Positions 1 to 31,224 of a stretch of 64,000 bases of DNA are shown here, piece by piece (position 1 is the stretch's first letter; every line of letters begins with the position of its first letter). A program made the translations under genes and the position numbers. This stretch comes from Rebecca billardiae RCC1528 (taxonomy: Eukaryota; Protista; Haptophyta): assembly GCA_965240325.2 (NCBI GenBank), contig OZ251239.1, forward strand, positions 248,001 through 312,000. Direction: 5' to 3'. Below the pieces are notes generated by a model that had not been told where the DNA came from, made no database searches, and saw only the letters and a list, made by a program, of their open reading frames with translations.

Positions 1-389
1 GCTCGCGGCCGAGAGGCGCTGCCGGCGGATGCCGGGGCTGCCGGCGCTGCCGCGGCTGCTCGTCGCGCGCGACGTGGGGCTGGCGCGCGGGCCCTGCACC
101 TCCGTCACAGCCTTCACCGCGGTGATGAGCTTCGGCAGGTACTCGCGCACCGCCTCGTTCACGCGCGACACCGTCGCGAGCTCGAACGCCTGCACGATCG
201 ACCCCTCGATGTGCGCGAGCGCCGCCTGCGAGTACATGACGGCAAAAGTGTCGACCGACGCAATCAGCGCGCCGTAGTCAGGCCCTGCGGGGACGGGCGT
301 GATCTCGCGCGAGGAGCGGCTGAGCTTGGAGGAGATGCGGGGGCGCAAGAGCGCCGGCGTGCCGGAGGCGAAGCGCGCGCGGTTGATCC

Positions 390-420
<31 letters not shown>

Positions 421-3400
421 CGAGCCGTTGGATGCCTCGCTCACGCGGCGCGAGCGCAGCGGCGCCGAGCCAATCGGCACGACGACCACGTCGTCGAGCG
501 AGCCGCCGAGGGCGCGCCAGACGACGAGCTCGAGCACGCACCACAGCCGCTCGACGAGGGTGGGACCCCAGAGCACGAGGAGCTGCCGGCACCGGCCGAG
601 CCGGACGGGCACGTGCGCGAGCTCCTCCGCCGGCCGCAGCGCCGGGCTGGCGCACAGCGCGTCCACCCACACGACCGGCGCGCGGCCGTGCTCGGCCGTG
701 AACGCGGCCGCGCGCGCGCGCAGCGCGTCGAGCTTCTGCGCGGGGTCGTCGCCCCACGAGTGCACGACGTAGTAGTCCGCGCTGGGCAGGCCGTCGTGGC
801 TGGAGAGCTCGACCTCGGCGCGCGCGAGCTGCACCGCCGCGAGCCCGTCGCCGGCGGCGGCGCGCGCGCGCAGCTGCTCGAGCAGCTGCAGCGCGCGCTC
901 GCGCTCCTGCACCGCCGCCGCGCTCGCGCCGCCGCCGATCGAGTCTTCGCTCACGTCCTTGGAGAGGCCGGGCGGGCCTCGGGCGCGGAGCATCTGGCGC
1001 CAGCGGCCGCCCTCGACGCCGCCGGAGCACGAGCCGTCGCCCTCGCTGCCGCCCGCGCCGCCGAAGCGGCTGCTGCCGCACGCCGGCGAGGAGGAGGAGA
1101 GGGCGCCGCCGAAGCGCTGCGCGCACGCGGGCGAGGGCGCGCCGCCGCTGCCGCAGCCGACGCCCGGCGCGACCGCGCCCGTGGCGATGCCGCCGAGGCT
1201 GCCGGCCGAGCCGCGCCTCGAGCTGGACCGGGACGTGCGCTGCGCGCCCGCCGCCGGCGATGCGGGCGCACCCTCGCGCCGCACCGAGTCTCGCGACGAG
1301 GACGAGCCGCGCGCCACCACCACGACGCCTTGCAGCTCGCTAATGGCCGCCGGGTGGCCGGGCGCGCGCCTGGCAAAGTTGAGCGCGGACGAGGCGAGCA
1401 CGGCCGCGTCGAGGCGCACCGGGCGCATGCACGCCAGCGCGAGCCCGACCAGCGCCTCCGGGTCGTTGTCGATCGCCTCCTTCGCCGGCGCGCCGAACCC
1501 GAGGATCGGCGCGAGGAACGCCGGACCGATCGAGAAAAGTCCGGACTGCGGCGCCACCGCCTTGGTCAGCCACTCCTGCAGGTGGCGGCGGCATGGCGGC
1601 CAGTGGAGCAGCCCGGCGACGAGCACGCCGACGAGCGGGTCGGCGAAGGCCAGCGCGCGGGCGGGCGGCGCGTCGGCCGCGTAGTACCCGAGCGCGTCCC
1701 GCGCGATCGTGAACCCGAGCGAGAGCAGCGAGTGCGCGCCCAGCCAGCTCCCGACCGAGGAGACCAGGCCGTGGTACAGCCGCCGATTATGCGAGCGGTG
1801 CTGCCGCACGAGCGCGTGGATGCGCGCGGCGGCGATGGTGAAGGAGAAGGCGAAGAGGAGCGAGGACACCGCCTGCAGCACCAGCGCGCCGTCGCCCGCG
1901 AGCCGCGCCGCGTGCGCGCGCCCGAGCTCCAGCGTCGCCGCGAGGAACAGCAGCTGCGCGGCGGCGAGCACTCCAAACACCGCGCGGCCGATCACCGAGA
2001 GCCGCACAATCAGGCCGACCGGGTCGGAGGGGTGCAGCGCGAGCATGCACGCGGGCAGCAGGAGGTACAGCGCGAAGATCACGCTGAGGTGGTACAGCGC
2101 GAAGAACGCCGGGTCGACGTAGTACGCCACCGCGAGCCCGAGCCCGGCGGTGGGCGCGAGGTGTGCCAGGTACCCTAACCAGAGCAGCAGCGTCGCGGCC
2201 CAGCCGACGCACGCGGTCAGCAGCGCGGCGTTGGACACGCGCTGCTGCGAGAGGCGCGCCTGCGCGACCGAGCGCTCGACCACGTCCATCAGCAGCGCGC
2301 GCGCCACCACGGCGCACTCGCGCCTCGGCACGCCGAGCGAGAGCGCCAGCGAGTCGCCGGACGCCGTCACCACCGGCGCCACGCGCGCCACCGCGAGCGG
2401 CGCGGCGTCGAGCGCGACGGGTGGAGGGCCGATGCAGCAGTCGAAGAGGCGGCTGCGCCGCGGCGGCGTGGGCGAGGAGGGCGGGCCCGGCGGCTCGGGC
2501 ACGACGCGCGCGCGCTTCGACCGCAGGCTGTCGCCGCGGCTCGTCGCCGCCGTCGGCGAGCTGCCGCCAACGGCCGCGCGCGAGGGCGGAGGGCCGCCGC
2601 CGCCGCTCGCCGCCGCCGACGCGGCAGCTGAGGGGTTCGTCGCGTCGGGCGCGACGCCCGCGGCGGCGTTCATGCTCAGGCCGCCCTCCTTCGAGGAGCG
2701 CGCGGAGAGCGTGGTGCCGCCCATGCTCATCTCCTCCTCGCCCTCGCTGCTGTCGCGCGCCATCTCCAGCGCGGTCGGCTCATACGACTCGGACCGAAAG
2801 ACGGCGGCGGCGCGGCTCCCGCCGCGCATGACGATGCCGGGCAGCGGACTGCCCGGCGGGAGCGAGGAGACGGGCGAGGCGAGGCACGTGCTGTCGTCGG
2901 CGAAGGAGATGCGCGCGCGCAGCCGCGTGTGCGGCACCACCTCGCCCGGCTTGCCCACCTCGCCGCCCGAGCCCCCCGCGTCGACGAGCGCTCGGCGGCT
3001 GCCCTCGCGGCTCCCGCTGTGAACAAGTGGCCTGGGCCCGGGCGACAGGAGCACGCCGCCCTGCTGCCGCGTGGCGAGGATCACCTCGTGGTACGTGTCG
3101 CGAAGCAGCTTGAGCACGAAGCGCACGTCGGGCGCGTTGGCGGGCTGCAGCAGCAGCAGGTGCCGCACGCCGTTCACCGTGATCGCGCGCGAGTCCGAGA
3201 AGGCCGTGGCGGTGTGCGGCAGTGCTGTCATCAGCGCGACGACTGCGAGCGATCGAGGCACGCGCGGCGGGCGCGCGCGGGGTGGCGCGTCGGGCGCGGG
3301 GAGCCGTCAGCCGCGGCGTCGGTCGGCGCGCGCGCGGGGGGCGAGCGCGCACGGCGGCGCCACGGGCACGCTCGCGCGCGACCACCACCACCACCGCGCC

Positions 3401-4728
3401 GCGCCGCGCCGCGCCGCACCGTCGTACGGCTTGACGAAACCGTTGAGGTGCGACACGATCGGAGCGCTCTCATCCAGCTGCTCGTAGCCCTCCTCCTCAA
3501 AGACGGCGACGGCGACGCCGCAGAAGGTCTCGAAGTACCACTGCTTGGTGCAGCGCGCGGGGAGCTGCCCGGCGCACAGCTTCTGCCACAGCCCCTCCAG
3601 CCCGAGGAACTGCGCGTCCGCCAGGTAGCGCATCACCGGGCACTTGGCGCGCTCGGCGAACGAGCGCGCGAGCTGCATCGGCAGCATCGGCACCGCGTAA
3701 CGGGAAGTAACGGTCATCGGCACGCCGTGCTCGAAGCAGAAGGCGTACGTCGCGCGCGCGCCGTCCATGTCGAAGCCTGACGCGCGGCGCGCGCGCGGGC
3801 GGGCGGCGCGCGTTGGCGTGCGCGCGCGCGCGATCGGCTCGCCGGCACGGCGCGCGCCGCGCGCCGCGGCCGTCGCTCGCGGGCGCGCCTCGCGCCGAGC
3901 GCGCTCTCACCGTTGTTCACGGAGCTGTCGGGTGCCCAGCCCGACTGCTGCGACTCGTCGCGCTCGAGGCCGCCCTGGATCGCCATCAGCCGCACCTTGC
4001 TGACGAAGTGCGCAGGGTCCTCCGCCATCAGGTCCGCCACATCGCGCAGCGACGAGATGCACACGATCGTGAGAGACTGGTCTGCCGAGTCTGCCAGCAC
4101 CGAGCGCAGCAGCTCGGCGCCGCCGTGCAGCTGCGCGTCGTCGACGTCGGTGTACCCCGCGAGCCGGTACTCGTGCGGCTGCGCCGCCGTCTCGCGCCCC
4201 GCCGAGCCGATCCCCACCGGCACGTCGTCCGCGTGCACGTGGTCCAACACGCAGCGCGCGAGCCGCGCGCGACGGATCGGCTGCCCGCCGCCGTTCGCGA
4301 CGACCGCGCGGAGGGTGAGCTGGCCCTGCTTGTGCATGATGGCGCATACGAGCAGGGCCTGGAGCACGGCGCGGGACGCACACCCCGCGCGCACGCGCGA
4401 GCGTACGCGCGCGCAGGGGCGATGCACCAGGCCACAGGTGAGCGGCGAGTGCTCATCACGAGCGTTGATGAGCTCCGGCGAGGTGCACGGCGCGCGCGCG
4501 GCTCATGCCGCAGACGCGCGTGCGGCGAGGCGGCGTGGGCACGCGCGCTCGGCGCGGGGAGGCGGGCGCGATGCGATCCACGGGCCGCGCGCTCAAGCAC
4601 GCGCGCCACGGGCCGCCCTGCCGCACCTTGACATCATCCGGGTCCGGGCCCGGGTCGGTGATCAGCGCTATTTGCAAGCCTTGCGGCCGGCAAGCGGCGT
4701 CGCGCTTGCGGCCGAGTAAGCTGCGCAT
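1..4728 (-). CDS. Nucleoside hydrolase-like / ~6TM / TIR(HET)-like fusion protein, copy A (3' end runs off the window)
   Basis: Hand-spliced exons 4728-4627, 4358-3911, 3776-3420 and 3242-<1, all GT..AG and frame-consistent. N-terminus has ITDPGPDPDD, ISSLRD, IQGG, SVNN.FD and KPYD (IU-nucleoside hydrolase-like motifs). About 6 hydrophobic helices at ~2230-1590. TIR/HET-like domain at ~780-480: DYYVVHSWGDD...VWVDALC...LLVLWGPTLVERLWCVLEL. The last exon is missing from the ORF track because it has no stop inside the window. Confidence 0.85.
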
Positions 4729-5929: not shown

Positions 5930-7726
5930 CTAGCTTCGCCGTTTAATTCCTGAGATGGCCTCAGACTCGGGACCGTCCGATCCGAGCCATTGCCACACCG
6001 AGCGCAGCCCACCGAGCACGTCGTCGAGCAACACCTGTGCCACACTAACCGCGCAATCGTTCACGCCGTACGAGAAGAGCAGGCGGGACGAATGACCTCC
6101 GTCGCTTTGACGACTGTGATGCTCGTCACTCTGCACCGGCTCCATGCCCAAGATGAATTGGATGCTATCGCAGTCCTGCCGCTCAGCAGAGCCCGCTGCT
6201 GAGCCGAGCGCAGGGAAGCACCACTCGGGGCCGAGCCGGCGGATGGCAAAGGGCGGGTGCGCGTCGAGGGTCAGCATGATTTGGGTGTAGTGGTGGCCGT
6301 ATTTGAAGACCGGAGCGTCGAGCTGCGCGCGCGCCCCATGGGACAGTTCCGCAGGACCCACTGATGAGCTCCGCGTCACCGCTAGCTTCTTGCCGCCCAC
6401 GTGCACGTGCACCGCCAGCAGCAGCTCATGACTCTGCGTGAGGAAGAGGGGGGCAGCTGAGAGGTGTATCCGAGGGACCACCGATCGCATACCCGCATGC
6501 GTCTGCATCAGCGATGCCCATGCGTTGGCCTCGCGAGCAGCCGCAGCCGTGGCGTTGCTGCTGGCCTTGCCACTAGCCCAGCCACCCTCCACGTCTGCCT
6601 GCGCAGGCTGCGCGCCCATCTCGAGCCTGGCCAACGGCAAGACGCGGCTGGGCGGCACGTCGGCCGCGCTGAACCTGCGGAAGCAGAGGGGGCACTCGTT
6701 GGGCCTGGCGCTCTCCAGGCTGGCGTTCACCATCACAACAGCCGGCGCAGGCCCCTGTCGCAGAGGACTCCAGCCAGGGGGGTCCAAGCTCCACAGCACA
6801 TGCAGCCTCTCCTTGTACCAGAAGGGCAGCAGGTTGCGGTCCCGCAGGCCTGGCCGCACACCAAGCGCACGGCTTTGTGCGTTCCTCGCTGCAAAGATGT
6901 ATCCGCCGTGGGTCTCAATGAGCAGCCTCGCGCGCAGCGCACATGCGCCTGTGCCACGCGCTCCGCGTACGCATTCGAGCAACAGCGGCCCCACTGCGTA
7001 CTTGTTGGCGGCCTCGCGCGGATGGCAGAGGCAGGACGCCCACAGGCCACCCTTGCCGTCCAGACAGGTACCCACACCCACCTCGCACGGCTCGCGGAGG
7101 AAGCGGCAGTCCGTAAGCGATGAGGGGCAGGACGTGACCCGCACGAGCACGCCGCGCGCAACCTGGTTGAATGCTCCGTCTAGGAGCGCAACCCCGAGCG
7201 TGTTGTCGAAGCTCTCCTCGTTCGTGCCGTTGCGGGGCGTGTAGTCCGCGCCCATTCGGACCGTCTTGTGGGTGTCCCTGCGATCGACTGTGGCAGCAGC
7301 ACACTCGTGGAACCTCCTGCAGAAGAGCATCACGTAGCGCGCGTCAGGGACGCCGAGGTGTCGAATCTCGCGCGGACGGAGCCTGGCCACCGGTGCGTTG
7401 TACTGAACCATTGGCGACGAGCCAGCGGGTGGCTGCGGCAGGTGCGGGCGGCGTAGTGTCGGCATCACGCGTGGCGTGGTACTGCTGCAGCGACCGGACG
7501 CATTTCCAGCGGCATCGTCGCAGAGCCTGGCCAGCTTGGGTGTCACCTCGCCGTCTGCCAGCGCAGGAACGCCAAACATGGCTTGAGGCCTCCAGTCGTA
7601 CCAAAGGCGTGCCGTTGGCGAGCCCGTTGGTGCGAGGGCCCCACAGTCCTTGATGAGGGTGAGCGCCAGCGCCAGCAGCAGGAAGCGTCGGCGACGCGCC
7701 ACATCACCAGAGCAATGAGGCAGCAT
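5930..7726 (-). CDS. Secreted or type II membrane protein with a five-bladed beta-propeller glyco-enzyme-like C-terminus (GT91/GH130-like)
   Basis: Intronless ORF. First ATG at 7726 is followed by RRRRFLLLALALTL (signal anchor). Motifs NLLPF...WSLDP and PPFAIRRLGPEWCF...IQFILGM...LLFSYGVNDC resemble beta-propeller mannosyltransferase/glycosidase folds. Family assignment is by eye. Confidence 0.6.
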   Translation of the reverse strand: MLPHCSGDVARRRRFLLLALALTLIKDCGALAPTGSPTARLWYDWRPQAMFGVPALADGEVTPKLARLCDDAAGNASGRCSSTTPRVMPTLRRPHLPQPPAGSSPMVQYNAPVARLRPREIRHLGVPDARYVMLFCRRFHECAAATVDRRDTHKTVRMGADYTPRNGTNEESFDNTLGVALLDGAFNQVARGVLVRVTSCPSSLTDCRFLREPCEVGVGTCLDGKGGLWASCLCHPREAANKYAVGPLLLECVRGARGTGACALRARLLIETHGGYIFAARNAQSRALGVRPGLRDRNLLPFWYKERLHVLWSLDPPGWSPLRQGPAPAVVMVNASLESARPNECPLCFRRFSAADVPPSRVLPLARLEMGAQPAQADVEGGWASGKASSNATAAAAREANAWASLMQTHAGMRSVVPRIHLSAAPLFLTQSHELLLAVHVHVGGKKLAVTRSSSVGPAELSHGARAQLDAPVFKYGHHYTQIMLTLDAHPPFAIRRLGPEWCFPALGSAAGSAERQDCDSIQFILGMEPVQSDEHHSRQSDGGHSSRLLFSYGVNDCAVSVAQVLLDDVLGGLRSVWQWLGSDGPESEAISGIKRRS

Positions 7727-8215
7727 GATGGAAGCGTGCCGGCGCGTGCGCTGACTGCCGAGGAGTCCCGGGGGAGTTGCAACCCCGTCGCTCAAACCTT
7801 CGCACCACGGCCCTTGCTCCCCCTGCTACGGCCCTCGCCCGGCGGCGTTCGCGCGCCCTCAGCAACCGCGGGCGATGACGACTGACGACGACGAGTCGAC
7901 GACGCAACACACACCGGCGCGCGCCTGCCTGATCTGAGAGGGAGCACGGCCGAACTCGGACTCATTCTATGATTTAACGACACAGGTACAGTTTCCAGGT
8001 CTCTCTTCGGAGAGCGTGCGATGAAGGAGGCGCGGCAACCTGCCACCGTGAGCCTTACGCACGTTAAAACAAATAAACTGTAGGACGACGCGGGTCTCCT
8101 GATTAATATTCGGACTCGTGTGAAGGTCCCTCCCACTGGCTTATCTCCTACTGTTGGATGGCGTTAATCACGCCTTAACCAAGTGTGCACGTTAAATCAT
8201 AGTAAACTGTACGTA

Positions 8216-8300
8216 CAGTTTACTAGACGCACACTGCTCAGACAGGCGAGATACCATACTGTTGCCTGAGCTGTGTGCGTCTCTTATTCTTAGTAAACTG
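8216..8300. mobile_element. Tiny Tc1/mariner-like MITE (TA|CAGTTTACT...AGTAAACTG|TA)
   Basis: TA at 8214-8215 and 8301-8302 flank imperfect inverted ends. An extra right-end fragment lies at 8201-8212. Related copies at ~12684-12751 and 37643-37690. Confidence 0.6.
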
Positions 8301-8319
8301 TACAGATCTTTCGGCCAGC

Positions 8320-9693
8320 ATGGAATCGTACCGCCGTCCCGCGGTCGCGCTCGCTCTCCGCGCGTTCCTCGCCGTGCTGGCACTGTGCGCGGCGCGCGGC
8401 GCACAGTGCCCAAGTGCCGAGTCGCCGCCCTTCGCCATTGTCGCCGAGCTCCTGCCCAAGCATCACCACGTCATCCCAAGCTCCATTGCATTTGCGCGTG
8501 AGCTTGGTGCACGCAGCGTGTTTGTGGTGAGCACCTCTGAACATGCATTCGGCGCCTCTGAGCTCCTCCGATGGGCTGCTTTTCCGGGTGTGACGCACGT
8601 GGAGCTCCGCAAGTCCAGCCTCGATGAAACTCTCGCGTGCCTCACCAGACACCCACGTCTCGCGCTCGTGGTCGTGCAGACATTGGCCGATCAGGCGCGC
8701 ACGCGTCAGAACATCTTGTTCTCGCAGCTTGCGCAGAGCCAAGCGTCGGTGCCGATCTTCGTGGGCTGCCACAGTCTCTTCCACATACATATCATTCGGG
8801 AGGCTTCCCGCCAGCACGCGCTCACTGGGATGGTCCCCCTCGCCTTCTGCCCCGGAATATACAAAGGGCTTGCCCAACGGGCGACGAACGGATGGCAACC
8901 GCCGACGTGGTACATGCCCGCGTACTTCGGTGAGCCCGCGGCCCGGACAGCGATGCAGCCCAGGGGCTGCCTCGATGACCGGACCGTGCGCTTCTACGTC
9001 CCGGGAAGCATTGATCAGCGCACAGGCCGCAACTGGGAGGCGCTGCGCGAGCTGCGCGAGCTGCAGATTCCTCGCGGGGTGCGCGTGCGCGTTGAGGTGC
9101 TGAGTGCTGTTCGAGGTGAGGACGGCCGGCGATTCGTGTCGATTCAGGACTTCGTGCGCAATGCCACGGGGGGGAGCGTCCAGCTGCATGCAGTGCAAGC
9201 CGACTGGGTCCCGGCCATCAACGCCATGAGCCACTCCAGCTTTTTGCTGCCGCTGATCGATGAGAGCAATCACAAGGTCTCAGACAACTACGCCAACGGC
9301 TTCACGTTGCCCTCCGTGCTTCCATTTGCGGAGGGCCTGGGCACACCGCTCGTGCTGTTCGAGAAGCTGGCGGCATCGTTTGCTGTGCGTGGCCAGATCA
9401 CGTACAATGCCTCCGCCGGCTTCCTCGGCGCCATGCAGCGCGCCGTCGACCTGTGCATCGGGACGTCGAAGGTGGGGCAGCATGAGCAGCGCGAAGCGTA
9501 CGACCAGCTTCGTGCCACCGTGCGCTCGAGCGTGTACTCGGAGGACGGGCGCCTTGCCGCCTTCGCGCCCGCGCGCAAGCTGGCGTGCGACGCCAACAGA
9601 ACGTTTATGGAGCAGTTGGGGACTGCACTGGGGCGTGCAGACTGCATGTGCTGCACGGCTACTGCCAACTACAGTACCGACTACTATAGCTGA
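8320..9693 (+). CDS. Signal-anchored putative GT-B fold glycosyltransferase-like protein
   Basis: Intronless ORF from ATG 8320 (MESYRRPAVALALRAFLAVLALCAA). The C-terminal half (FYVPGSID..RN, SFLLPLID, PSVLPFAEGLGTPLVL) resembles a GT-B nucleotide-sugar-binding domain. Confidence 0.55.
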   Translation: MESYRRPAVALALRAFLAVLALCAARGAQCPSAESPPFAIVAELLPKHHHVIPSSIAFARELGARSVFVVSTSEHAFGASELLRWAAFPGVTHVELRKSSLDETLACLTRHPRLALVVVQTLADQARTRQNILFSQLAQSQASVPIFVGCHSLFHIHIIREASRQHALTGMVPLAFCPGIYKGLAQRATNGWQPPTWYMPAYFGEPAARTAMQPRGCLDDRTVRFYVPGSIDQRTGRNWEALRELRELQIPRGVRVRVEVLSAVRGEDGRRFVSIQDFVRNATGGSVQLHAVQADWVPAINAMSHSSFLLPLIDESNHKVSDNYANGFTLPSVLPFAEGLGTPLVLFEKLAASFAVRGQITYNASAGFLGAMQRAVDLCIGTSKVGQHEQREAYDQLRATVRSSVYSEDGRLAAFAPARKLACDANRTFMEQLGTALGRADCMCCTATANYSTDYYS

Positions 9694-9989
9694 GTTATTC
9701 GTCGTGCTGATGACAAATGAATAATATATATATATGACCGCGTTCCGCGGTCCTTTTCTGCATAGAATCAACGCAGTTGGGGGCCCGCGGTGGCCGTGCA
9801 ATCGCGGCTCTCCGCCGTAGTGGCAGTTCGCCAGTTGAAGTCGGTTCTGAGATGACTGAAGCTATATTAGTCCGACCGTCGCCCTGCCTGCGCGACCGCG
9901 AGACTCATTCACACTTCACACAATATCACAGCAGCGGACCTGAGACCGCACCCGGCACCGGTCGTCAAATCGGACGTCCGTCTGACAAC

Positions 9990-14003: not shown

Positions 14004-14192
14004 CTGGGATTGGGAAGGCGACCACGACCCTGGCCTCGCCCGCCGTCGCGCGCGCCTCGAGTTGACGAGCACCCACGCCGACGCTTTTCAGACTCGAACG
14101 TCACTTCCCCTGGGTACTGTCTGGTACTCTCCTCCGGACTGCGCCGCCATCGTTACTCGGCGGGCACAGCCCGTCTGGGGTTAACCTCACAG

Positions 14193-20138: not shown

Positions 20139-20296
20139 TCACCCTTGGTGAGGCCGCTCGAGCGACTTCGTGTCTGGCGAGGCAGATCGCGCCAGTGCGT
20201 GGCGATCGAGGCAGACGCCTGCCTCGCCGCTTGGCGAGGCAGCTAAGCTAGTCAAGGGTGTCCAGCAGCCCCGCAGGACTGCTCCGGCCCGAGGCG

Positions 20297-23200
20297 ATGG
20301 CCGACGAGTGGTTCGACGCGGCGGAGGACTTGGAGAAGGCGGCGGCGGCGGCGCAGGGGTCGCTGGCGCCGCCGCGGCCGCTGCCGGCGCAGGCGGGGCC
20401 GAGGCGATCGCGCTCGTCTGTCAGCTTCTACGAGGAGCTCGTCGAGCCCGAGCCCACCCATCTCGGCGCGGCGGTCGAGAGCGGCTTCAGCGTGCGGCTG
20501 GTGCGGCTGCGCGCGCGCGAGGTGCGCCACGTGTTCGGCCCGCCGTCGTGCGAGCTCTTCGCGACGGTGAGCTTCCAGAACGGCCTCGCCAACGCGCGCG
20601 GCCGGCGCACGGTGGTCTTCCGCTACCGCGACGTCCTGCTGCTGCACGCGCGGCTCTTTGTGGCGCAGCCGTGGGCGTACGTGCGCTCGGGCGCGGCGCG
20701 CCGGCTGAGCCTGGTGCCCAAGTCGGCGGCGGGCCGCGCGCGCGACGTGCGGCTGGTGGAGTCGGACGTGCGCGCGCTCGTCGAGTCGCACGGCTCCTCG
20801 GCGCACGTCCTCGCCTTCCTGCGCACGTCGCGGCTCGCGCTCACGCCCGCGCACGCGCGCGCGGCGCTCGCGACGTACGCACGCGTCAACGTGCAGCACA
20901 TCGACGGCGTGCTGGAGCAGAAGCCGTGGGTGGTCGCGGCGGAGCGGCTGGGCGGCGCGTGCTCGCCCGCGTGCATCTTCCAGGGCTACCGCGGGCTGCT
21001 CACCCTCCTCGGCTTCTACGCGCTGCTCGGGCTTCTCGGGTTGCTGCTTGAGCTGCTGCTGGGTGAACCGCGCCGGCCGGGGCCCAAGGCGGCGCTGCTC
21101 GCGCTGTGCGTGCTGGCGACGGTGGTGCCGCCGTGCTACTGCCACCGCGTGGTGCTCCGGCCGAAGAAGCGCCGGCGCGGCTGGCTCTCCGCCCTCGGCG
21201 CCGCGCTCTTCCTCGGCGCCACCCTCGGGCTGCGGCTGCAGTGGGGTGCCAGCTTTGCGCGCCACGAGGCGCGCGAGCAGGCGGCCGCGGCCGCGGCCGC
21301 CCACCCGGCGGAGGGCGCGCACGGCGGCGGCGGCGGCGGCGGCGCGGAGGCGTCGCGCGCGCACGCGCTCGGCGACGCGGCGCTCACCGTCGAGGCCTTC
21401 CTCCTCTGGTCCGCCATGTTCGTCACGCCGGCGTACATGCTGTACTGGTGGATGGCCGCGCCCGCGCGCCGGCGCACGCTCTGGGTCGAGCTCCGGCCCT
21501 CGTCGATCACGCTGGCGCGGGGGCCGGACGCGCGGCGCGCGGAGCTGGTGATGCTGCTCGACTCGCACTTCGCCGCGCGCGCCGTCGAGGGCACGCCCGC
21601 CATCGAGCTCAGGAACACCATGTCCGAGCTCTCGCTCGAGCTGGGCTCGGTCGGCGCGCGCGACCAGTGGTACTCAGCCATCTGCGCGGCCGCGGCGAGC
21701 TCCGCGCGCGTGCTCGCGCGGCACGGGCACGGGGCGGGCGCGCCCGCGGGTGCGCCCGCGGCGGACGGCGCGGCGGGCGAGGCGGCGGGCGTGCCCGCCG
21801 CCCCGGCGCCCTCGCCGCCGCGCGCGCGCAGCCCCGCGCCGACCCGCCTCGGCCGCTCGGCTCGCGTGCCGAGCGGCGCGCCGCCGCTGAGCGGAGGCGC
21901 TCGGCTGAGCGGAAGCGGCGGCGCGTCGGGCGCGCGGCGGGGCGCGCAGCGCTCGCGGCGCAGCGGCGCGACGGCGGAGCAGCACTCGTCGGGCAGCGTC
22001 GACGCCGAGCTCTACGTCTCGATCGAGGACACGCCGCTCCCGCCGCTCGGCCCGAGCGGCTTTGCGCAGCACCCTCACGGCGCCTTTGCGCCTGTGCGCG
22101 CGCCGTGCGAGTGGGAGCCGCACCCGTGCGAGGAGGAGGAGGAGGAGGAGGAGGAGGAGGAGGAGGAGGAGGAGGAGGAGGAGGAGGGCGGCGGCGTGGC
22201 GGGCGCGCCGCGAGAGGACGCCGCGCCGGCCGCCACCGTCGTCGACGCTCGCTCGGGGGAGATGGGCATGGGCGGCGAGGCGCGCTCGGGCGCAGGCGCG
22301 GGCGCGAGCGCGGGCGCGGGCGCGGGCGCGGCCGGCGGCGCGGGCGCGGCCGGCGGCGCGGGCGCGGCCGGCGGCGCGGCCGAGGCCGGCGGCGGCCGAG
22401 GTGGCGCGGCGGGCGGCTGGGCACGGCGGGAGGACGGGCCGAGCCCGCGCGTCTCGGGCGCGAGCGCGCTGCCCCCGCCGCCGCGCCGCTCGCGCTCACA
22501 CACCGCCCGGCCCCGGCCCAACCCGACCGAAGCAATTTGGTTTGTCGACGGCGCGGGCTATTTTGCGGCCGTGCACGCCGCCATTGCGGCCGCGCGACAC
22601 ACGGTACTGATCGCGGACTGGTGGCTCACGCCGCACCTGTTCCTCACGCGGCCGGTGGACGGCGCGGAGCTCGACGCGCTCGAGCGCACGGCGGCGGCGC
22701 GCGCGCCCCCCGCCACCGGCGCGCCCGCCGAGCGCGCCGAGTCAGTTGACGTCGGGGAGAGTGCTGACAGCTCAGCGCTGCTCGCGCGGTGGCGCGCGCG
22801 CGCGCCGCGCCCGTCGTCGGACGACGCGAGCTCGAGCGTGGGCGCGCGCTCCTCCGCCTCGCTCGGCGGGCTGGAGGCGGGCGAGGGCGGCGGCGCGGGC
22901 ACGCGCGGCGGCGGCGCGGGCGCCGCGTGCCGCGGCTCGCCTGCCGACGCGAGCGCGGCGCGGCGCGCGGCGCGCGCGCGCGCCGCGCACGCCGGCGGCG
23001 CCGCAGCTGACGCCGACGGCGGCGGCCGCCTCGACTTGCTCCTCCAGCGGAAGGCGCGGCAGGGCGTGCACGTGTACGTGATGCTGTTCAAGGAGCTCTC
23101 CTTCGCGCTCGGCATGCGTTCCCGCTGGGTGAAGGCCTGGCTCAAGTCTCTCGACAAGCGCATCCACGTCATCCGCGACCCTGACTTCATCGCGCGCCAG

Positions 23201-25713
23201 CTCGGCCGCTGGTCGCACCACGAGAAGCTGGTCGTGGTGGACGCGGAGCTCGCGTTCGTCGGCGGGCTGGACTTGTGCTACGGGCGGTACGACACGCCCG
23301 AGCACCCGCTCTTCGACCCGGCCGGCCGCACGTTCCCCTGGCTCGACTATCACAACCTGCGCCTCGAGCCACTCGGCGACGTGGTGGCATACGCACGCGA
23401 CGTGTTGCGGCGTGACGGCAGCGCGGGCGCGGCCGCGCTGCGCGCGTGCGCGTCGCGCGAGGGCGGCGAGGCCGCGGAGGGCGGCGGCGGCGGGGGCGCG
23501 GCGGCGGCGGCGGCGGCGGCGGCGGGCGCGGAGGGCGGGCGCGCGCAGCCGCGCATGCCCTTCCACGATGTGGCGTGCGCGATCACCGGCCGCGCGGTGC
23601 TCGACGTCGCCTGGCACTTCACGCAGCGCTGGAACTACGCCGCGCGAGTGAAGGCGATGGGGGTGCCACCGCTGGTCCCTCCGGAGCGGCAGCACTCGGG
23701 GCACGCGCAAAGGCTGCTCCGCGCGGTGGCGCGCGCGACGGCGCGGCCCGAGCTGCGCGGCACGTGCAGCGTGCGCGCGTACCCCGTGAGCTGCCAGGTG
23801 CTCCGCTCCGTCGGCCGTTGGTCTGCGGGCTGCCCGACGGAGGCGTCCATTCTCACCGCCACCCTCTCACTGATTGCGGAGGCTGAGCGCTTTGTCTACC
23901 TCGAGAATCAGTTCTTCATCTCGTGCGCGCACGACGAGGCGGGCCAGGACGAGCCCACCAACCAGGCGCGCGCACACTGCCACGCCAGCGCAGCGCCGGC
24001 GCGCGCGCGCGCGCGCGCTCACCCGCCGACGTGCGCGCCCGCGCACGCTGCGATGCGCCGCTGACGGCTGCTGGCCTGCTGGCTGGCCGGTGTGCCGCGG
24101 GTGTGCGCACGCTGTCGCGCGCGCGGCGGCGCGCGCAGGTGGCTCGCGCGCTGTATGCGCGCATCATGCGCGCGGCGGCGGAGCAGAGGACGTTCCGCGT
24201 GATGGTGGTGGTGCCGCTCTTCCCCGTCGCGGGCGGGCACGCCGACCCCGAGCAGAAGTCGATGACGATCAACTTGCTGATGCACCAGCTGTACGCGACC
24301 ATCTCGCGCGGCGGTCGGTCGCTGCTCGAGCGGCTGCGCGCAGCGGGGCTCGAGCCCCGCGAGTACGTCGCTTTCTTCGGGCTGCGCACGCACGGCACGC
24401 TGAGCGCGGCGGGCGGCGGCGCGGGCGCGGGGCCGGCCTCGCCGCCCGCGGGCGCGTGCTGCGCCTCGCTCCCCTCCGCGCCCCGCGGGTTCGTCAACTA
24501 CAACGGCCCGCCGCCGGTCGTCGAGTCTGAACAGGTGTACGTGCACTCTAAGCTGATGATTACTGACGCGCGCTGCGTGCTGATTGGCTCGGCGAACATC
24601 AACGACCGCTCGCTGCTCGGGGAGCGGGACTCGGAGGTGAACGTGCTGCTGCGCGACGCGGACGAGGGGGGCGGCGGGCTCGGTGCCGCCGCGTCCGCCG
24701 CGGACGCCGCGGACGCGGCGGCCGGCGCGGCCGAGCGCGCTGGCGCGCCGCCGCCGCCGCCGCCGCGCGTCGGAGGCGGCGCGCCCAGCCTCGCGCGCAC
24801 GCTGCTCGCGCAGCTGCTCGTGGAGCACCTCGGGCTGGAGCGCGCGCCGGCGGAGCTGCGCGACGAGATCCTGCGCGACCCGGCGGGCGAGCGCGCGTGG
24901 GCGTCGGTCCGCGCCATCGCCGCGTCCAACACGCGCCTCTTTGACCGCGCGTTCCGCTGCGTGCCGATGGATGATGTGACGTCGTTCGCGCAGCTCGACG
25001 CGCTGCGGAGGGGGCGGCTGGGCGCGTCGGCGAGGCCCGCGGGCGGCGGCGCCGGGCGCGGGTGCTCGGGCTCGGGCACGCCCTCACTCAACTCCAGGCG
25101 CTCGTTCGGCTCGTCACTCTCTCAGACCGGGCGGGGCATGCTCCGCTCACTCGACACGGCGGCGCTGCGGCTCGCGCCTGCGCTGCTGCAGCAGCCCGAG
25201 CCGCGCGCCGCGGCGGCGCTCGGGTCCGAGTCGAGCGGCGGCGCGCCGGGGCCGCTGCGCCCGGCCGGGAGCGTGGCGCGCTGCTCGGCGCTCACGCTGC
25301 CCTCCGTGTACTCCTCCGAGGCCGAGCACTCCGACCGCTCGGTCGTGCCCGACGCCGCGGCGCTCGGCGCAGCCGGCGCGCTCCGCCCCCGCGCCGCCGA
25401 TGCCGACGCGGCGAGCGCGCAGCCGCCGCGCTCGCTCGCGCACGGCGTCGCCGAGGAGGCGGTGGACGAGCCGGACCCGCTGGGTGGGCTGGCGCCGGCG
25501 CTCGCCGACGTGGGCGACGCGTCGCTGCGGATGGACTACGCCGCGACCGCGCTCGGGCAGCACCTCAACGCCGCGGCGGCCGTGGACGTGTCGATGCTCG
25601 AGCTCGTGCAGGGCCACCTATGCGAGCTGCCGCTCGACTTCCTGCGCGACGAGCAGCTGCAGCCCGAGCACCCGAACAGCCTGATGCGCGAGCTCATCGA
25701 GACGGTGCAGTAG
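20297..25713 (+). CDS. PLD: Phospholipase D (PLD1/2, PX-PH-like class) with transmembrane segments in the N-terminal region
   Basis: Two HKD motifs: WSHHEKLVVVD..FVGGLDLCYGRYD and YVHSKLMITD..IGSANINDRS. Also WFVDG..YF, IADWWLTP, PRMPFHDV, FTQRWN, YLENQFF and RDSE. Exons 20297-23965 and 24139-25713 are joined by a GC-AG intron (EPTNQ|VARALYARI). Confidence 0.93.
22130..22186 (+). repeat. (GAG)19 poly-Glu tract within PLD
   Basis: Read directly from the sequence. Confidence 0.95.
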
Positions 25714-26276: not shown

Positions 26277-29200
26277 ATGAGGGAGGACTTCCTCGTCATC
26301 TGCGACCCGGGTCCCGACCCAGATGACGTGAAAGGTGCGCCCCGCGCGCGCGGCGCGTGCGATCGCCGGGCCGCGCGCCGCCGTCTCGCTGAGCTCGCTC
26401 ACTCGCTTCCCCCGCGCGCCGCCGTGCCGTCCACGCGCCGCGGCTCGCGAACGCGCGCGTGCAGTCATCGTCACACTGGGTGTGCTACACAAGCAGCGCG
26501 CGGTGCGGCTGCGTGGCGTGATCGCGAACGGGAGCCAGGCGCCCGAGGACCGCGCCGCGCTCGCGGCGTGCGTGCTCACGCACGTCGGCGTCACCGGCGT
26601 CCCGGTCGGCGTGGGCGCGTGCGGCCCGGCCTACGAGGCCAAGCCGCACGAGTTCGCGCTGGAGGGGTACGAGGCGGTGAACCGCGCGGCGCGGCTGGTG
26701 GACGGCGCGCAGCTGCTCATGCGCCTGCTCCGCTCGGCGCGGCCGCGCTCGCTCACCGTCCTGTGCATCTCCTCGCTGCGCGACCTCGCGGACGCGATCG
26801 CGTCTGACCCCGAGCTCGTGCGGCGCGCGGTGTGCCGCGTGGGCGTGCAGGGCGGGCTGGAGCGCGACGCGTCGAGCCAGTCGGGCTGGGCGCCGGACAC
26901 GGCGCAGAACAACGTGTACGACATGGACGCGGCGCGCACCGTGTACGACTTCTGCCTGCTGCGCGCCGTGCCGCTCACGGTCGTGTCGCGCGACTGCGTG
27001 CCGCTGCTGCCGATGCAGCTGGCGCGCTCGTTCGCGCAGCGCACGCACTCGCCCGTGCTGCGGTACCTGGCGGACGCGCAGTTCCTCGGGCTGGAGGGGC
27101 TGTGGCAGAAGCTCTGCGCCGGCCAGCTCCCCGCGCGCTGCACCAAGCAGTGGTTCTTCCAGACCTTCTGCGGCGTCTCCGCCGAGCACTTCTCGCGGCG
27201 CCGGTACGAGCTGCTCGGGCCCGACGCGTCGATTCTGCACCACCTCAACGGTTTCGTCAAGCCGTATGACGTGGTGGCGCTGATGGCGGTGCTGCCGCAG
27301 ACGCGCGCGCACGTGCTCCCCGAGGGCGCTGCGTTCCACAGCGCCGCGCACCCCGCCGCCGCCTCGCGCACGCCGCCGCTCATGTCGATCTCGCTGCCGA
27401 TCTCGCCGGCGCGCGCGCTGCGTCTCTCGTGTGCCTCGCGCTCAGCGACCGGTGCGCTCGAGCTGGGCGTGGACGGCGGCGCGGAGGCGCCGCCGGTGCC
27501 GCCGCGCGGGATGGGCTGCGGCTCGAGCGCGCCGACGCTCGGCGGCTACCTCTCCCCCTCGCCCTGCCCCTCCACCGCCGCCACCTCCAGCTGCAGCGCC
27601 TCGCTGAGCGCGTCGGCCAACGCGTCCGGCCGGCCGAGCCCGCCGCCGCGCCGCCGCGGCTCGCGCACCGCCGACCTGCCGCCGCTCGGCGCGGGGCTGG
27701 AGTCGGCGGCGCCGCCCGTGCTCGAGGCGCAGCCGAGCGGCGGCAGCAGCACCGTCGGCGGCGCCGCCGCCGCGGGCGCCGCGCTCGACGAGCGCCACTG
27801 GCTGCTGCTGGACCCGCGCCACTGTGTGCCAGAGTCGATGGTACTTGTTTTACTCCGGGATATCTACCATGCGGTTTCGTTCGCCGGCGCGCCGGCGGCG
27901 CCGGGCGAGCGGCGGCGGCGGCGCGGCGAGGCGCGCGGCGCGGGGCGCGCGCATACGCCGCCCCGCGCGCGCATCGGCGAGACCGCCTTCCGCTCGGCGC
28001 GCGTCGCCTCGGCGGGCGGCGCGCACGCCGCGTTCGCGGCATGCCACGAGCTGCTGGGCACGCAGCGCACGTCCGGCGGCACGCTGACCGACCTGCAGAT
28101 CTGCGCGCTGCTCGAGGCGGCGCTCTCGCAGGCGCGGCGCGCGCAGAAGCGGCTGGCGGACGCGGCGGTGAGCGTCGGCGCCATTCTTTTCCTCCTCGCC
28201 ACCGCCGCCGCCATCGCCGACCAGGCCGTCGCCGCGCGCCGGCTCGCGAGCGCGCGCGCCGGCGCCGCCGAGATTGTGCATCTCGAGATCGCGCATCTCG
28301 CGCGCGCGCCCTTCTACGCGCTGCCCGCGGTGCTCGGGCTGCAGATCGTCCTCGTGGCGATGCCGCCGTCGGACGCGGCGCAGAGCCTTGCGCGCGCGGC
28401 GTGCGTCAGCGTCGGCGCGGCGGGCGCCACTTCCTGTGCGCTCGGCGCGTGGGCGATGAGCACGCGCCTGGGGCTCCACCGCAGCGCCTACTCGGCGGCC
28501 GTGCTGGCGCTCGCGGGCGGCCAGCTCGCGCTCGCGGCGTGCGTGCTCGCGTCGCTCGGCGCGCACTCGGCGCGGCTGTGGGCCCGGACGCACGAGCTGC
28601 TCGGCAGCCTGTGGCGCCACGTCGCCGCCGCCATCTTCGCCTTCGCCCTCCCGAGCGCCGCCATCTTCGCCGTCGTCGCCGCGGCGCAGGCTGCTGGGCT
28701 GCACGGCGCCGCGCCGCGCCGCGCGCTGCTGATCGCCGACCTTGGGGCGTGCGCGCTGCTCGCCGTCGCCGGCGCGCTGATGCTCAGCTCGGGGCGGCGC
28801 GCCGCGCTGCAGTCGTGGGTCGCGCGCAGGATCGGCGCGCGCGGCGAGCTCGCCGCGCTCGCGCCGCTGATTGGCTTCGGCTCGGACGAGGCCGTTGACG
28901 TGGCGGGTCTTGTCGGCCACGCGCGGCACGCGCTGTGCGGCGTGCGGCTGCGCCGCGGCTGCGAGGGCGAGCTGCGGCGCTGGTTCGGCGCGGACGGGGG
29001 CGTGGGCGCGGAGGGCGGCGGACGGGACGGGCGGCGGCGCGTCGGCTCGCCCGCGCGCGCGCGCGTCGGCGCCGCCGCTGCCGCCGTGCCCACCTCGCCG
29101 CAGCGCTCGCGCGTGGGTAGCGGCGGCGCCGACGCGCGCGGCGGCGCCATCGCCAACGCGGCTTGCGGCTACACCTGCCGCGTGCCGCCGCGGCCGGCGC

Positions 29201-30038
29201 ACGCGGGGCAGACGACGCCGCTGGCGACGTCGGCGAGCGGCACGCCGGGCGGCGCGACGCCGGCCAGCCTGGGCACACCCGCGTGCTCCACGCCCGCGCA
29301 GCGCTCTCGCTCGCCGAGCACGGGGCCCTGCAGCCGGCAGCCGTCCTGCCCCGCCAGCCGGACTCCCTCCGGGCCCAACTCCCGGCGTGGCTCCTACGGG
29401 ACGGTGCCGGCCGCGAGCGCCGTGGGCGCGCTCGGCCGCACGCGCGAGGAGGGCGAGGGCAGCGGCTCCAAGGCTTGCTCTCGTAAATCTTCGCGCTCGA
29501 GCAGCCTCTCAGGGGCGTCCACCATCGTGGGCGAGGCGATCGCCAAGATGCGCTCCTCCGCCAAGCTGCCCGGGTACGGCCGGCCAGCGGCGGCGCGCGG
29601 GCGAGCCGGCGGCGCGGCGGGCGCGGAGGAGGCGCTCGGCACGGACGAGGAGGGCGGCGCCGAGCGCGACGATGCGGAGGGGGACGCTGGCCGGGCGGAG
29701 CGAGGCGCGCCGCGCGCGCGCGTGCGCGTGCGCTCGCCCACGCGCGTGAGCACGCTCAAGAGCCGCATGTCCGCGCCCGCCCGGCTGCGCGCCACGCGCG
29801 GCACGGCGTCCGACGCGAGCCCCGAGCGGCCGGCCAACGGCGCGGCCGGCGGCGCGCGCGCGGACGCGGCCGCGGGAGTGCGCCCTGGCGGCGGCGGCGC
29901 AATGCACCCTTGTGCCTCCATGCCAGCAAGCATGGGCCGCGGCCGCGCGAGCGCCGCGGCCGGCGCCGCGCCGCCGCCCGACCCGTCGGGCACGCTGCCC
30001 GTGAGCGGCAGCTCCATCTTCGAGGCGTTCCGCTCGCT

Positions 30039-30069
<31 letters not shown>

Positions 30070-31224
30070 AGCGTTGGCAGCGGGCGCAGCTCGGCGCAGC
30101 TGCTCTCGCCGGGCGGCGGCGGCCGCGCGCCGCGCGGCCGCGAGGGCGTCGACTGGCGCGACCAGCTCCCGCGCGTGGACGCATTCGTCGTGCACTCGGA
30201 GGCGGACGACGGCGGCGCCAAGGCGGCCGCGCTCGCCGGGTGGTCCCGCGCGTTCCGCGCGCGCGAGGGGCGCTCGCCCGTCGTGTGGCTCGACGCGGCG
30301 TGCGCGCCCGACGGCCTTCCGCCGCACCGGCTGCTTGCGTACACGCCTGTGTTTCTCGCACGCAGTCGCTCGCTGCTGCTGCTCTGCGGGCCTCAGATCG
30401 TGGACTCGCTCTGGCCGGTGGCGCAGCTGTACTGCTGGCACGCGATGGGCGGCAGCTACCGCCACGTGGAGGTGCAGGTGATCGGCGGCGACGCGGCGAC
30501 GCGGCTCGAGGCGGTGGCGGCGCTGGACGCATTTCACGTCGCCATCGCACGCGCATCACCGCTCGCGGCGTGGGGCGGCGGCGGGTGGCACGGCGCGGGC
30601 GCGCTCGGCGGCGGCAGCGGCTCACGCTGCAGCCGGCTCAGCCATGAGCAGCGCAGCAGCGTCAGCAGCGCCGGCAGCAGCTTCCGAGGCGCCTCGCGCC
30701 TCTCCCGCAATCTCGCCAAGGCGCGCCGCCGGCTCGCGCACGCGGTCGAGCTCTCGGGCGCGCAGCTCTTCAACGAGCTCGTCCGCGAGTACGTGCCCGT
30801 GGTGCGCGCGGCCGCCGGCGCAACCGACGACGACGCGGCGGACGGCGAGACGGACACGGACACGTGCCGCGACGACGACACGCCCTTCGACACGGAGCTC
30901 GACGACGACGACCTGTCGATGTGCGACGAGGACGACCTGCTCGACGAGCTCGACGGCGACGCGTACGCGCGCAACACCGAGCGCGATCTCGAGATGCAGC
31001 AGATGGACGCAGTGATTGACGTGCGCGTCGGAGTCGTGCGGTCGGCGTGCGTGCCGCTGCCGAGCACGGCGCGCGCCTCAGCGCCGCTGCCGCCGAGGCA
31101 TCCTGGGCCGATCAGCAGGGAGCGCCCTGAGCCCTGGTCGGCGAGCCTCCCGGGGTCGAGCGAGCCGCCAGTGTCGTCGATCACGCGCGCCGCGTACTCG
31201 CGTCATCCGCAGGCAGCAACATGA
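26277..31224 (+). CDS. Nucleoside hydrolase-like / ~6TM / TIR(HET)-like fusion protein, copy B (catalytic Glu position is Gln)
   Basis: Exon 1 is 26277-26334 (MREDFLVICDPGPDPDDVK), then a GT-AG intron 26335-26464, then exon 2 to TGA 31224. Hydrolase motifs ISSLRD, VQGG, AQNNVYD, KPYD. About 6 TM helices at ~28160-28790. TIR-like domain at ~30170-30480: DAFVVHSEADD...VVWLDAAC...LLLLCGPQIVDSLWPVAQL. Confidence 0.87.

Follow-up and report, generated by a model that had tools for sequence, protein, structure and literature searches.

Gene Organization of the Locus

The window analysed here, a 64,000-nucleotide stretch of contig OZ251239.1 from the haptophyte Rebecca billardiae RCC1528, carries two genes, A and B, which lie where they were originally predicted, in divergent orientation and separated by about 21.5 kb. 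In agreement with the same prediction, both show a three-part layout in a single frame, made of an N-terminal hydrolase domain, six transmembrane (TM) helices, and a C-terminal alpha/beta domain. The features are the following:

4728 to beyond base 1, minus strand: gene A, four exons, 3' end outside the window
4728-4627, 4358-3911, 3776-3420, and 3242 to beyond base 1, minus strand: exons of gene A, GT-AG junctions read
3070-4728, minus strand: XopQ/HopQ1-like (HLP) nucleoside-hydrolase domain of gene A, interrupted by three introns (NCBIfam, Pfam, and gene B matches)
4633-4656, minus strand: DPGPDPDD of gene A, which corresponds to DXXXDXDD, the HLP clan's non-canonical calcium-binding motif
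1369-2316, minus strand: membrane block of gene A, with six TM helices, a conserved helix before TM1, and a conserved segment after TM6 (LAPILGFG)
97-819, minus strand: TIR/HET-like domain of gene A, into which about 65 low-complexity residues are inserted (AlphaFold2 model, family profile)
529-531, minus strand: Glu codon of gene A in WCVLEL, the catalytic-type Glu of TIR enzymes
26277-31224, plus strand: gene B, two exons (26277-26334 and 26465-31224), stop codon TGA
26335-26464, plus strand: intron of gene B
26277-27876, plus strand: XopQ/HopQ1-like hydrolase domain of gene B (PDB, NCBIfam, and Pfam matches)
26304-26327, plus strand: DPGPDPDD of gene B
28057-28974, plus strand: six-helix membrane block of gene B (hydropathy and homologue alignment)
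30142-30834, plus strand: TIR/HET-like domain of gene B, degenerate at four near-invariant family positions
30424-30426, plus strand: Gln codon (CAG) of gene B replacing the catalytic-type Glu (LWPVAQL)

The expected landmarks were all recovered, namely DPGPDPDD (in both copies), NN..D, and KPYD in the hydrolase domain, PSD after TM2, R..LQ.W, and LAP(I/L)(L/I)GFG after TM6 in the membrane block, and D.(Y/F)VVHS..DD...VW(V/L)DA.C...LL.L.GP...LW...(E/Q)L in the C-terminal domain. A tblastn search of the window with B as the query matched the hydrolase of A at E values of 4e-35 and 4e-50 and its C-terminal domain at 2e-20, and no further copy besides A was found in the window. A and B belong to one haptophyte multigene family, within which they are old paralogues; they are related copies, as proposed, but they are not mutual nearest relatives, since database proteins about 60% identical to them outrank the other copy.

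Integrity and Distribution of the Fusion

The single open reading frame, the high GC3 over the linkers, and the homologues with the same order bear out the view that the three parts form one gene. Specifically, the last segment of the gene A hydrolase (VVALMTALPHT...LLRDTYHEV) is encoded by exon 4, an open frame of 1081 codons in which GC3 is 0.93-0.99 throughout, while GC3 of gene B is 0.88-0.99 in every 100-codon window. At least 18 long proteins share the order nucleoside hydrolase (NH), TM block, and TIR; their sources are Diacronema lutheri, Pavlovales sp. CCMP2436, and metagenomes, and two proteins with this order (P0018 and P0156) derive from MMETSP transcripts. An artefact of the gene models, in which the hydrolase and the TM-TIR part would be separate neighbouring genes fused only in appearance, is very improbable: stop codons are rare in DNA of 77% GC, long stop-free frames occur here in several frames, and the models of A and B were read from DNA alone, but the last conserved hydrolase segment shares exon and frame with the TM and TIR parts, GC3 stays at 0.90-0.99, unbroken over both linkers, the two transcriptome-derived homologues carry the whole architecture, and the order is common to both paralogues and to the homologues.

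Moreover, other arrangements exist, as the hydrolase and TIR domains are combined without TM helices in P0172 and follow the rearranged order TM-TIR-NH in P0169, which argues for a functional coupling of the two domains. No paper describing the fusion was found in the literature searched, in line with the original impression that the architecture was undescribed.

The N-Terminal Domain Is a Distant Homologue of XopQ

The N-terminal domain had been described as IU-nucleoside-hydrolase-like; PDB and NCBIfam searches place it specifically with the XopQ/HopQ1 type rather than with generic IU-NH. Against the PDB, gene B matches the XopQ structures 4kl0, 4p5f, and 7jlu at E values of 3e-18 to 9e-18, versus 3e-3 for a classical IU-NH, and the homologue P0018 matches XopQ at 3e-33, with no other match at or below 0.01. 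The analogy with yeast Urh1 and nicotinamide riboside, drawn originally, is not the nearest one. In NCBIfam, the XopQ model (NF041355) is the sole model matched, by exons 2 and 3 of gene A (E values of 6e-8 and 4e-9) and by gene B (2e-23). The scores of 82.6 bits for B and 121 bits for P0018, versus a cut-off of 500 bits, led to the rejection of equivalog status and mark the domain as a distant homologue. With a likeness to XopQ of about 30-35%, as judged by eye, and 121 versus 500 bits, the substrate specificity of XopQ is not safely transferable to the algal domain.

The Pfam model IU_nuc_hydro (PF01156, gathering cut-off of 34.2 bits) scores 31.5 bits on exon 2 of gene B and 22.6 bits on exon 2 of gene A, the first exon with the Asp motif being excluded, and reaches an E value of 9e-5 on exons 2 and 3 of gene A; full-length homologues lie above the cut-off (P0004 with 48, P0158 with 42.5, and P0018 with 38.9 bits). 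The calcium-binding motif of the HLP clan is DXXXDXDD rather than DXDXXXDD (PMC11685791), and both A and B have the former, their TDPGPDPDD aligning with TDPNKDPDD of XopQ. Algal HLPs, some of them from Emiliania huxleyi, have been mentioned previously (PMC6019455).

The hydrolase is the most conserved part of the protein, with a mean column identity of 52% and with invariant Asp and Asn at the calcium- and ribose-binding positions. Furthermore, four Cys that have no counterpart in XopQ are invariant across the hydrolase domains of the algal clade. In gene B, about 150 low-complexity residues (approximately 27340-27790) are inserted ahead of the last conserved segment, and a search of this insert for a canonical in-frame intron found none.

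The Membrane Block and the Topology

The AlphaFold2 model of the gene A membrane block (m9c23d2e1950b, pLDDT 77.6) contains six TM helices, in agreement with hydropathy and with the alignment of homologues, and no fold match to this model was found in the PDB or the Atlas. No signal peptide was predicted in A or B, and the predicted inner loops hold 11 Lys and Arg residues versus 4 on the outer loops. Together with the count of six helices, these features are consistent with the predicted cytosolic location of both the hydrolase and the C-terminal domain.

The C-Terminal Domain Belongs to a Protist TIR/HET-like Family

Pfam searches with the C-terminal domains of A and B returned no match, be it to TIR, TIR_2, HET, or any other model, even at an E value of 10. 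Conversely, within the large and mainly haptophyte TIR/HET-like family to which these domains belong, 30 of the 106 members match TIR_2 (best E value 9e-7), two match TIR, and ten match HET (PF06985), the latter weakly (best E value 6.5e-4), and the family profile finds convincing matches in the PDB to TIR chains only. In the AlphaFold2 model of the gene A domain (mded4ea76f0fa, pLDDT 80), the best 35 Foldseek and the best 50 VIA-align matches are all TIR, with Z scores of up to 11.3 over 136-143 residues, and the domain is predicted to adopt the flavodoxin-like TIR fold. The relationship to TIR and HET that had been proposed from motifs is upheld by these matches and by the predicted fold.

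The two copies differ at the putative active site. Conservation of the catalytic-type Glu across the family reaches at least 90%, and 18 of the 21 NH-fused members keep it. In gene A it stands in the WC..E arrangement, where helix alphaC begins, and its counterpart in the plant TIR motif WCLDEL (7xoz) is the established catalytic Glu; every other near-invariant family residue is retained as well. Gene B, in contrast, has lost four near-invariant residues (W to E, R to S, C to P, and E to Q), and the same substitutions recur in the database protein P0167. The original prediction of two NAD-consuming receptors is therefore narrowed at best to A, with a putative activity, since B is devoid of the catalytic-type Glu.

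A Candidate Membrane Writer-Eraser

Each product is one polypeptide that joins an HLP glycosyl-hydrolase, a six-helix membrane block, and a predicted TIR-fold domain, with the soluble domains predicted to lie in the cytosol. XopQ is reported to hydrolyse the TIR product 2'cADPR to ADPR by cutting its 1''-2' ribose-ribose bond and to be a very efficient and highly 2'cADPR-specific enzyme, an activity known solely for bacterial XopQ homologues (June 2026 preprint, bioRxiv 10.64898/2026.06.15.732069). Given this activity of XopQ, the N-terminal domain more likely processes or erases a TIR-made signal than senses a nucleoside and gates the TIR, the role first suggested for it. The best explanation of the family, which the sequences lead us to hold with moderate confidence, would be a membrane-bound TIR writer with a fused eraser. 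Specifically, the TIR of copy A would be activated, presumably through oligomerisation in the membrane, and would cleave NAD+ to yield an ADP-ribose-derived signal, while the fused HLP domain, by homology with XopQ, would hydrolyse 2'cADPR or a close analogue. Writer and eraser together might keep the background signal low or render the signal local and short-lived, in the manner of GGDEF-EAL proteins for c-di-GMP. Copy B, in which the hydrolase is intact and the TIR has no Glu, may serve as a regulatory subunit or solely as an eraser, perhaps within hetero-oligomers. Several considerations weigh against the writer-eraser proposal: neither A nor B gives a Pfam TIR or HET match by itself, the hydrolase is only distantly related to an enzyme that is highly specific for 2'cADPR, many TIR domains are scaffolds, not enzymes, and a protein that both makes and breaks a signal could cycle to no effect unless either activity is regulated.

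Alternatively, the HLP domain, whether catalytic or not, may bind a riboside or an ADPR-type metabolite and, by its occupancy, switch the TIR or the membrane block, making the protein a one-component receptor. A crystal structure of XopQ contains ADPR (4p5f), both XopQ and HopQ1 were for many years regarded as catalytically inactive on nucleosides (bioRxiv 10.64898/2026.06.15.732069), the hydrolase is N-terminal to the membrane block, where sensor domains are frequently placed, and the four Cys of the algal clade, missing in XopQ, could form a regulatory site. Still, the calcium-binding and catalytic-type Asp and Asn are all kept and nearly invariant, which exceeds the needs of binding, and the closest characterised relative is an efficient enzyme, so that a sensor role appears unlikely.

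A different reading concerns the other end of the protein, where the C-terminal domain, in the manner of fungal HET or animal adaptor TIR domains, could serve in oligomerisation or cell death while leaving NAD+ uncleaved, with the hydrolase working on an unrelated ribosyl compound at the membrane. The HET matches of the ten family members, the automatic naming of Atlas clusters as 'Heterokaryon incompatibility domain-containing', the conserved domain that B and P0167 retain without the Glu, and the presence of adaptor TIRs (MyD88, TLRs) among the structural matches all fit such a module. However, it is rendered improbable by the conservation of the Glu across the family and in the NH-fused members, and by the repeated fusion to a XopQ-type hydrolase in three arrangements, which would be difficult to account for if the two did not share a small molecule.

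Returning to the writer-eraser, a fuller version can be put forward only tentatively: haptophytes may employ a 2'cADPR-like TIR signal, with this family as its membrane-bound writer-eraser, a XopQ-class enzyme as the built-in terminator of host TIR signalling, Glu-less copies such as B in a dedicated erasing or regulatory role, and the six-helix block as the input or output element.

Implications

Bacteria, plants, and animals all use TIR domains to produce immune signals from NAD, and, to our knowledge, little is known of how hosts themselves switch these signals off. For 20 years the role of the effector XopQ was a puzzle, until a preprint of 2026 showed its cleavage of 2'cADPR. The repeated fusions of a XopQ-type hydrolase to TIR, in several arrangements, provide independent "Rosetta-stone" evidence that the two act on the same molecule. 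They also point to signalling by TIR-made small molecules in haptophytes, a group of phytoplankton that is central to bloom formation and whose interactions with viruses are important. One such protein would offer a compact and testable system for the making and breaking of a signal, and a natural pair, A with the Glu and B without it, lies inside one 31-kb stretch. If the proposal is true, the enzyme class that is injected as XopQ against plant TIR immunity also terminates TIR signalling from within a eukaryotic host.

Comparison with Known Systems

The XopQ/HopQ1 effectors of the HLP clan share with the hydrolase of A and B the fold, the clan, the DXXXDXDD motif, and the conserved Asp and Asn positions in SSLRD, NN..D, and YD, but they are secreted bacterial type III effectors, whereas the domain described here is encoded by a eukaryotic host and shares its polypeptide with a membrane block and a TIR. 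The enzymatic TIRs (SARM1, plant TNL and TIR-only proteins such as RUN1, RPS4, and RPP1, bacterial Thoeris ThsB, AbTir, and SPARTA) share the predicted fold over nearly the whole domain (Z 9-11), their betaA D.(F/Y)(V/I)SHS and WC..E(L) motifs align with the haptophyte family, and one family member matches ThsB, albeit weakly. They differ in that A and B belong to a separate protist family with an additional invariant W.D..C.DQ, as in HET, and in that the domain of A and B is attached to six TM helices. The fungal HET domain (PF06985), for which we know of no established biochemical activity, shares the landmarks HSW, W(I/V)DA(L)C, and W..E with the family, but the family matches TIR_2 more often and better than HET, and the taxa and partner domains are unlike.

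Among haptophytes, Gephyrocapsa huxleyi expresses multi-TM TIR proteins when infected by virus (New Phytol 2025, PMC12489294). Compared by their description, they resemble A and B in that a TIR with a conserved Glu comes after several TM helices near the N-terminus, but no extra domains are reported for them and a nucleoside hydrolase is never mentioned (PMC12489294). Lastly, GGDEF-EAL proteins offer an analogy, as they combine a maker and a degrader in one polypeptide that is often membrane-anchored, with folds and chemistry unrelated to those of A and B. In these proteins, one of the two domains is frequently degenerate, a condition comparable to that of copy B.

Gene structures and genomic context

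Two paralogous genes of the Rebecca billardiae window, A and B, code for proteins that join an N-terminal hydrolase domain of the XopQ/HopQ1 type, a block of six transmembrane (TM) helices, and a C-terminal TIR/HET-like domain (C-domain). The original prediction had placed them 21.5 kb apart in divergent orientation, and their coordinates, exons, and orientation are recovered, together with all the motifs that it quoted.

Features of the window, with strand
4728 to beyond base 1, minus: gene A, four exons (4728-4627, 4358-3911, 3776-3420, 3242 to beyond base 1), GT-AG borders seen in the sequence
3421-3776, minus, and 26990-27290, plus: four-cysteine region of the hydrolase domains (residues 196-268 of P0018, a transcript-derived homologue)
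5930-7795, minus: long ORF of 621 residues between genes A and B, no Pfam match
8275-9693, plus: long ORF of 472 residues between genes A and B, no Pfam match
12820-14076, minus: EsV-1-7 ORF of 417 residues between genes A and B, eight cysteine-rich repeats (Pfam PF19114, E 8e-110)
20258-25713, plus: large phospholipase-D-like gene with two HKD (PLDc) motifs (ORFs 20258-24064 and 23923-25713)
26277-31224, plus: gene B

Gene B starts with the ATG at 26277, its exon 1 (MREDFLVICDPGPDPDDVK) extends to 26334 and is followed by a GT donor, and the acceptor AG at 26463-26464 gives an in-frame junction into ...VIVTLGVLHKQ; the open frame spans 1629 codons (26335-31224). Exon 4 of gene A stays open for 1081 codons and leaves the window, the 3' end of the gene lying outside it; this exon carries the final conserved hydrolase segment together with the membrane and C-terminal parts. 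The GC content per 2 kb ranges from 58 to 80% across the window and is about 77% over the two genes; since stop codons are rare at such GC content, codon periodicity was examined, and GC3 is about 0.90-0.99 in each 100-codon window of both ORFs, including two low-complexity linkers. Therefore, the entire stretch is coding in a single frame. At the end of the gene B hydrolase (about 27340-27790, plus strand) lies a Pro/Ser/Ala-rich insert of about 150 residues that is absent from gene A; GC3 is still high there, no canonical candidate for a hidden in-frame intron is found in it, and the insert is perhaps a genuine loop, or else an intron of unusual type.

Gene A is the sole match to gene B within the window in tblastn (E 4e-35 and 4e-50 for the hydrolase, 2e-20 for the C-domain). 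A recent local duplication is rejected, because both genes have nearer relatives in the databases than in one another; they are old paralogues that merely happen to be neighbours. The phospholipase-D-like gene ends about 560 bases upstream of the gene B start. An Ectocarpus virus is where the EsV-1-7 motif was originally noticed. For the hydrolase-TIR genes, scans of viral contigs yield no relatives of the hydrolase or of the TIR-like domain, and BFVD returns nothing beyond generic TIR and deoxyribosyltransferase folds. PADLOC has no match for A, B, and P0018, and gives one weak ThsB match for the homologue P0002.

The N-terminal hydrolase domain

The hydrolase domain belongs to the HopQ1-like protein (HLP) clan, which is defined by the calcium motif DXXXDXDD, as opposed to DXDXXXDD of the classical enzymes (PMC11685791). 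Specifically, TDPGPDPDD of P0018 aligns with TDPNKDPDD of XopQ, and DPGPDPDD is also found in A and B. Against the PDB, exon 2 of gene B matches XopQ (4kl0, 4p5f, 7jlu) at E 3e-18 to 9e-18 and classical nucleoside hydrolases at 3e-3 at best, while residues 8-316 of P0018 match XopQ at E 3e-33, with no other match at or below 0.01. The XopQ model is likewise the sole NCBIfam match, with a score far under its equivalog cut-off. The IU-nucleoside-hydrolase-like assignment of the original prediction is narrowed accordingly: Pfam IU_nuc_hydro scores slightly under threshold on the separate exons (31.5 bits for B), and the closest kin is XopQ rather than the classical enzymes. The proposed analogy with yeast Urh1 and nicotinamide riboside is rejected as the closest model, the classical enzymes matching about 15 orders of magnitude worse.

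Among 16 homologues, the hydrolase is the best-conserved part of the protein (52% mean column identity), and the Asp and Asn residues at the SSLRD, NN..D, and PYD positions are invariant or nearly so. Four cysteines (FC..., LCAG, LPARC, ETFCG) are invariant in the algal hydrolase clade, and XopQ lacks them at the corresponding places of the alignment; a metal or redox site is a possible role for these residues.

The C-terminal domain and its Glu-less variant

The C-domain family is revealed by exhaustive profile search and not by word-indexed searches. Pfam gives nothing relevant for the C-domain or the TM block of either copy, even at E 10; a word-indexed protein search with the C-domain alone returns just two matches, and one with exon 4, scored over the C-domain, returns none, low-complexity words being probably to blame. 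Conversely, the exhaustive search retrieves 2833 cluster representatives at E <=1e-3 and 1662 at <=1e-10. Pfam recognizes TIR_2 in 30, HET in 10, and TIR in 2 of 106 aligned members, and nearly all matches of the family profile in the PDB are TIR domains (TLR15/TLR2, SIGIRR, plant RPPT-TIR, SNC1). ESM Atlas neighbours are haptophyte clusters automatically named "TIR domain-containing" or "Heterokaryon incompatibility domain-containing". The AlphaFold2 model of the copy A C-domain, built on the family alignment (pLDDT 80, pTM 0.75), has low confidence in the Gly-rich insert alone; its top 35 Foldseek and top 50 VIA-align matches are all TIR domains (VIA-align Z up to 11.3 over 136-143 residues), so that the TIR-type domain proposed at the outset is borne out by the predicted structure.

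The near-invariant positions of the family are H, S, W, D, R, W, D, C, R, W, C, and E. The Glu of the family WC..E motif aligns with that of the plant WCLDEL motif (7xoz), which is known as the catalytic Glu of NADase TIRs. All of the near-invariant residues, Glu included, are present in copy A, while the TIR domain of copy B (30142-30834, plus strand) carries four replacements: W to E, R to S, C to P, and E to Q. The nearest TIR relative of copy B in the databases, P0167 (52% identity), shares its E, S, and Q replacements and has T instead of P at the remaining position. Since P0167 has similar replacements, the Glu-less state seems to mark a "pseudo-TIR" subfamily that is being maintained, not a copy in decay, and the window supplies intact-Glu and Glu-less copies side by side, the latter of a type conserved elsewhere.

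Membrane block and topology

Hydropathy gives 5-6 peaks in the membrane block, and its AlphaFold2 model (pLDDT 77.6) has six long helices, preceded by a pre-TM1 helix and followed by a short helical segment after TM6. The predicted cytosolic loops hold 11 K+R against 4 on the other loops; this bias and the absent signal peptide fit a cytosolic location of the hydrolase and TIR domains, so that both probably face the cytosol, as originally proposed. The six-helix block has no significant fold match in the PDB (best E 0.39, TM-score <0.3) or in the ESM Atlas (TM-score at most 0.38 by query), where the single row at 0.49 (by match) belongs to a small helical protein unrelated to it; for this reason the block is given no function and is not named a channel or transporter. 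Homology of the block links the hydrolase-bearing proteins with one another and, by an iterated local HMM, with many TM-TIR proteins of 450-620 residues that lack the hydrolase; the hydrolase is therefore an N-terminal addition to a pre-existing TM-TIR module.

The fusion in other proteins

The shared three-part architecture of the original prediction, in a single frame in both genes, recurs in the databases. An N-terminal IU_nuc_hydro domain is present in three long matches of the TIR search, and a search with the P0018 hydrolase domain finds 24 long proteins from Diacronema lutheri, Pavlovales sp. CCMP2436, MMETSP transcriptomes, and metagenomes. Of 25 long proteins inspected (22 of these 24 plus the homologues P0004, P0018, and P0072), at least 18 have the order hydrolase, 5-6 hydrophobic peaks, TIR-like domain. 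Moreover, P0172 is a soluble hydrolase-TIR fusion with no TM helices, and in P0169 the hydrolase follows the TM-TIR part; that the two domains are joined repeatedly and in more than one arrangement points to a shared function. In P0003, a further arrangement of these modules, a single protein carries two TM-TIR units in tandem. The gene call of P0072 (JGI contig) reads through an in-frame intron after NGFVKP, in the same place as the third intron of gene A, whose position seems conserved in the family.

Proposed mechanism and relation to known systems

XopQ and HopQ1 are reported to cleave the O-glycosidic ribose-ribose bond of the TIR product 2'cADPR to give ADPR, with near diffusion-limited efficiency and high specificity, and mutation of two conserved Asp residues abolishes the activity (preprint June 2026, 10.64898/2026.06.15.732069); eukaryotic or fused homologues are unmentioned there. 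This activity, combined with the hydrolase, TIR, membrane, and fusion evidence, leads us to propose, at about even chances, a membrane-anchored TIR "writer" with a fused XopQ-type "eraser". The TIR domain would cleave NAD+ to a signal product, inferred to be 2'cADPR or a close analogue, and might serve in defence; the HLP domain would hydrolyse this product, and copy B would act as an eraser-only or regulatory paralogue.

The original idea that the hydrolase senses a nucleoside or NAD catabolite and gates the TIR domain is rather unlikely next to the kinship with XopQ, a highly efficient enzyme. Equally doubtful is a HET-like C-domain devoid of enzymatic activity that serves in cell death or as an adaptor, beside a hydrolase of unrelated function: it would agree with the HET matches and the Glu-less copy, and stands against the Glu conserved across the family and the recurrent fusion. 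A gene-model artefact is very improbable, as the transcriptome-derived P0018 and P0156 back, by indirect evidence, a single mRNA for the fusion.

The writer-eraser proposal joins parts that are already known. HLPs have been listed in algae, Emiliania huxleyi among them, in an analysis of the hydrolase domain alone that leaves TIR and transmembrane regions unmentioned (PMC6019455). The searched literature holds no description of the hydrolase-TM-TIR fusion, in agreement with the claim of an undescribed architecture, and no paper on host-encoded XopQ-like domains linked to TIR domains; individual family members are present as database entries for uncharacterised proteins. Multi-TM TIR proteins of Gephyrocapsa huxleyi are expressed in virus infection, but, in contrast to A and B, they are reported with no additional domains and a nucleoside hydrolase is never mentioned (PMC12489294).
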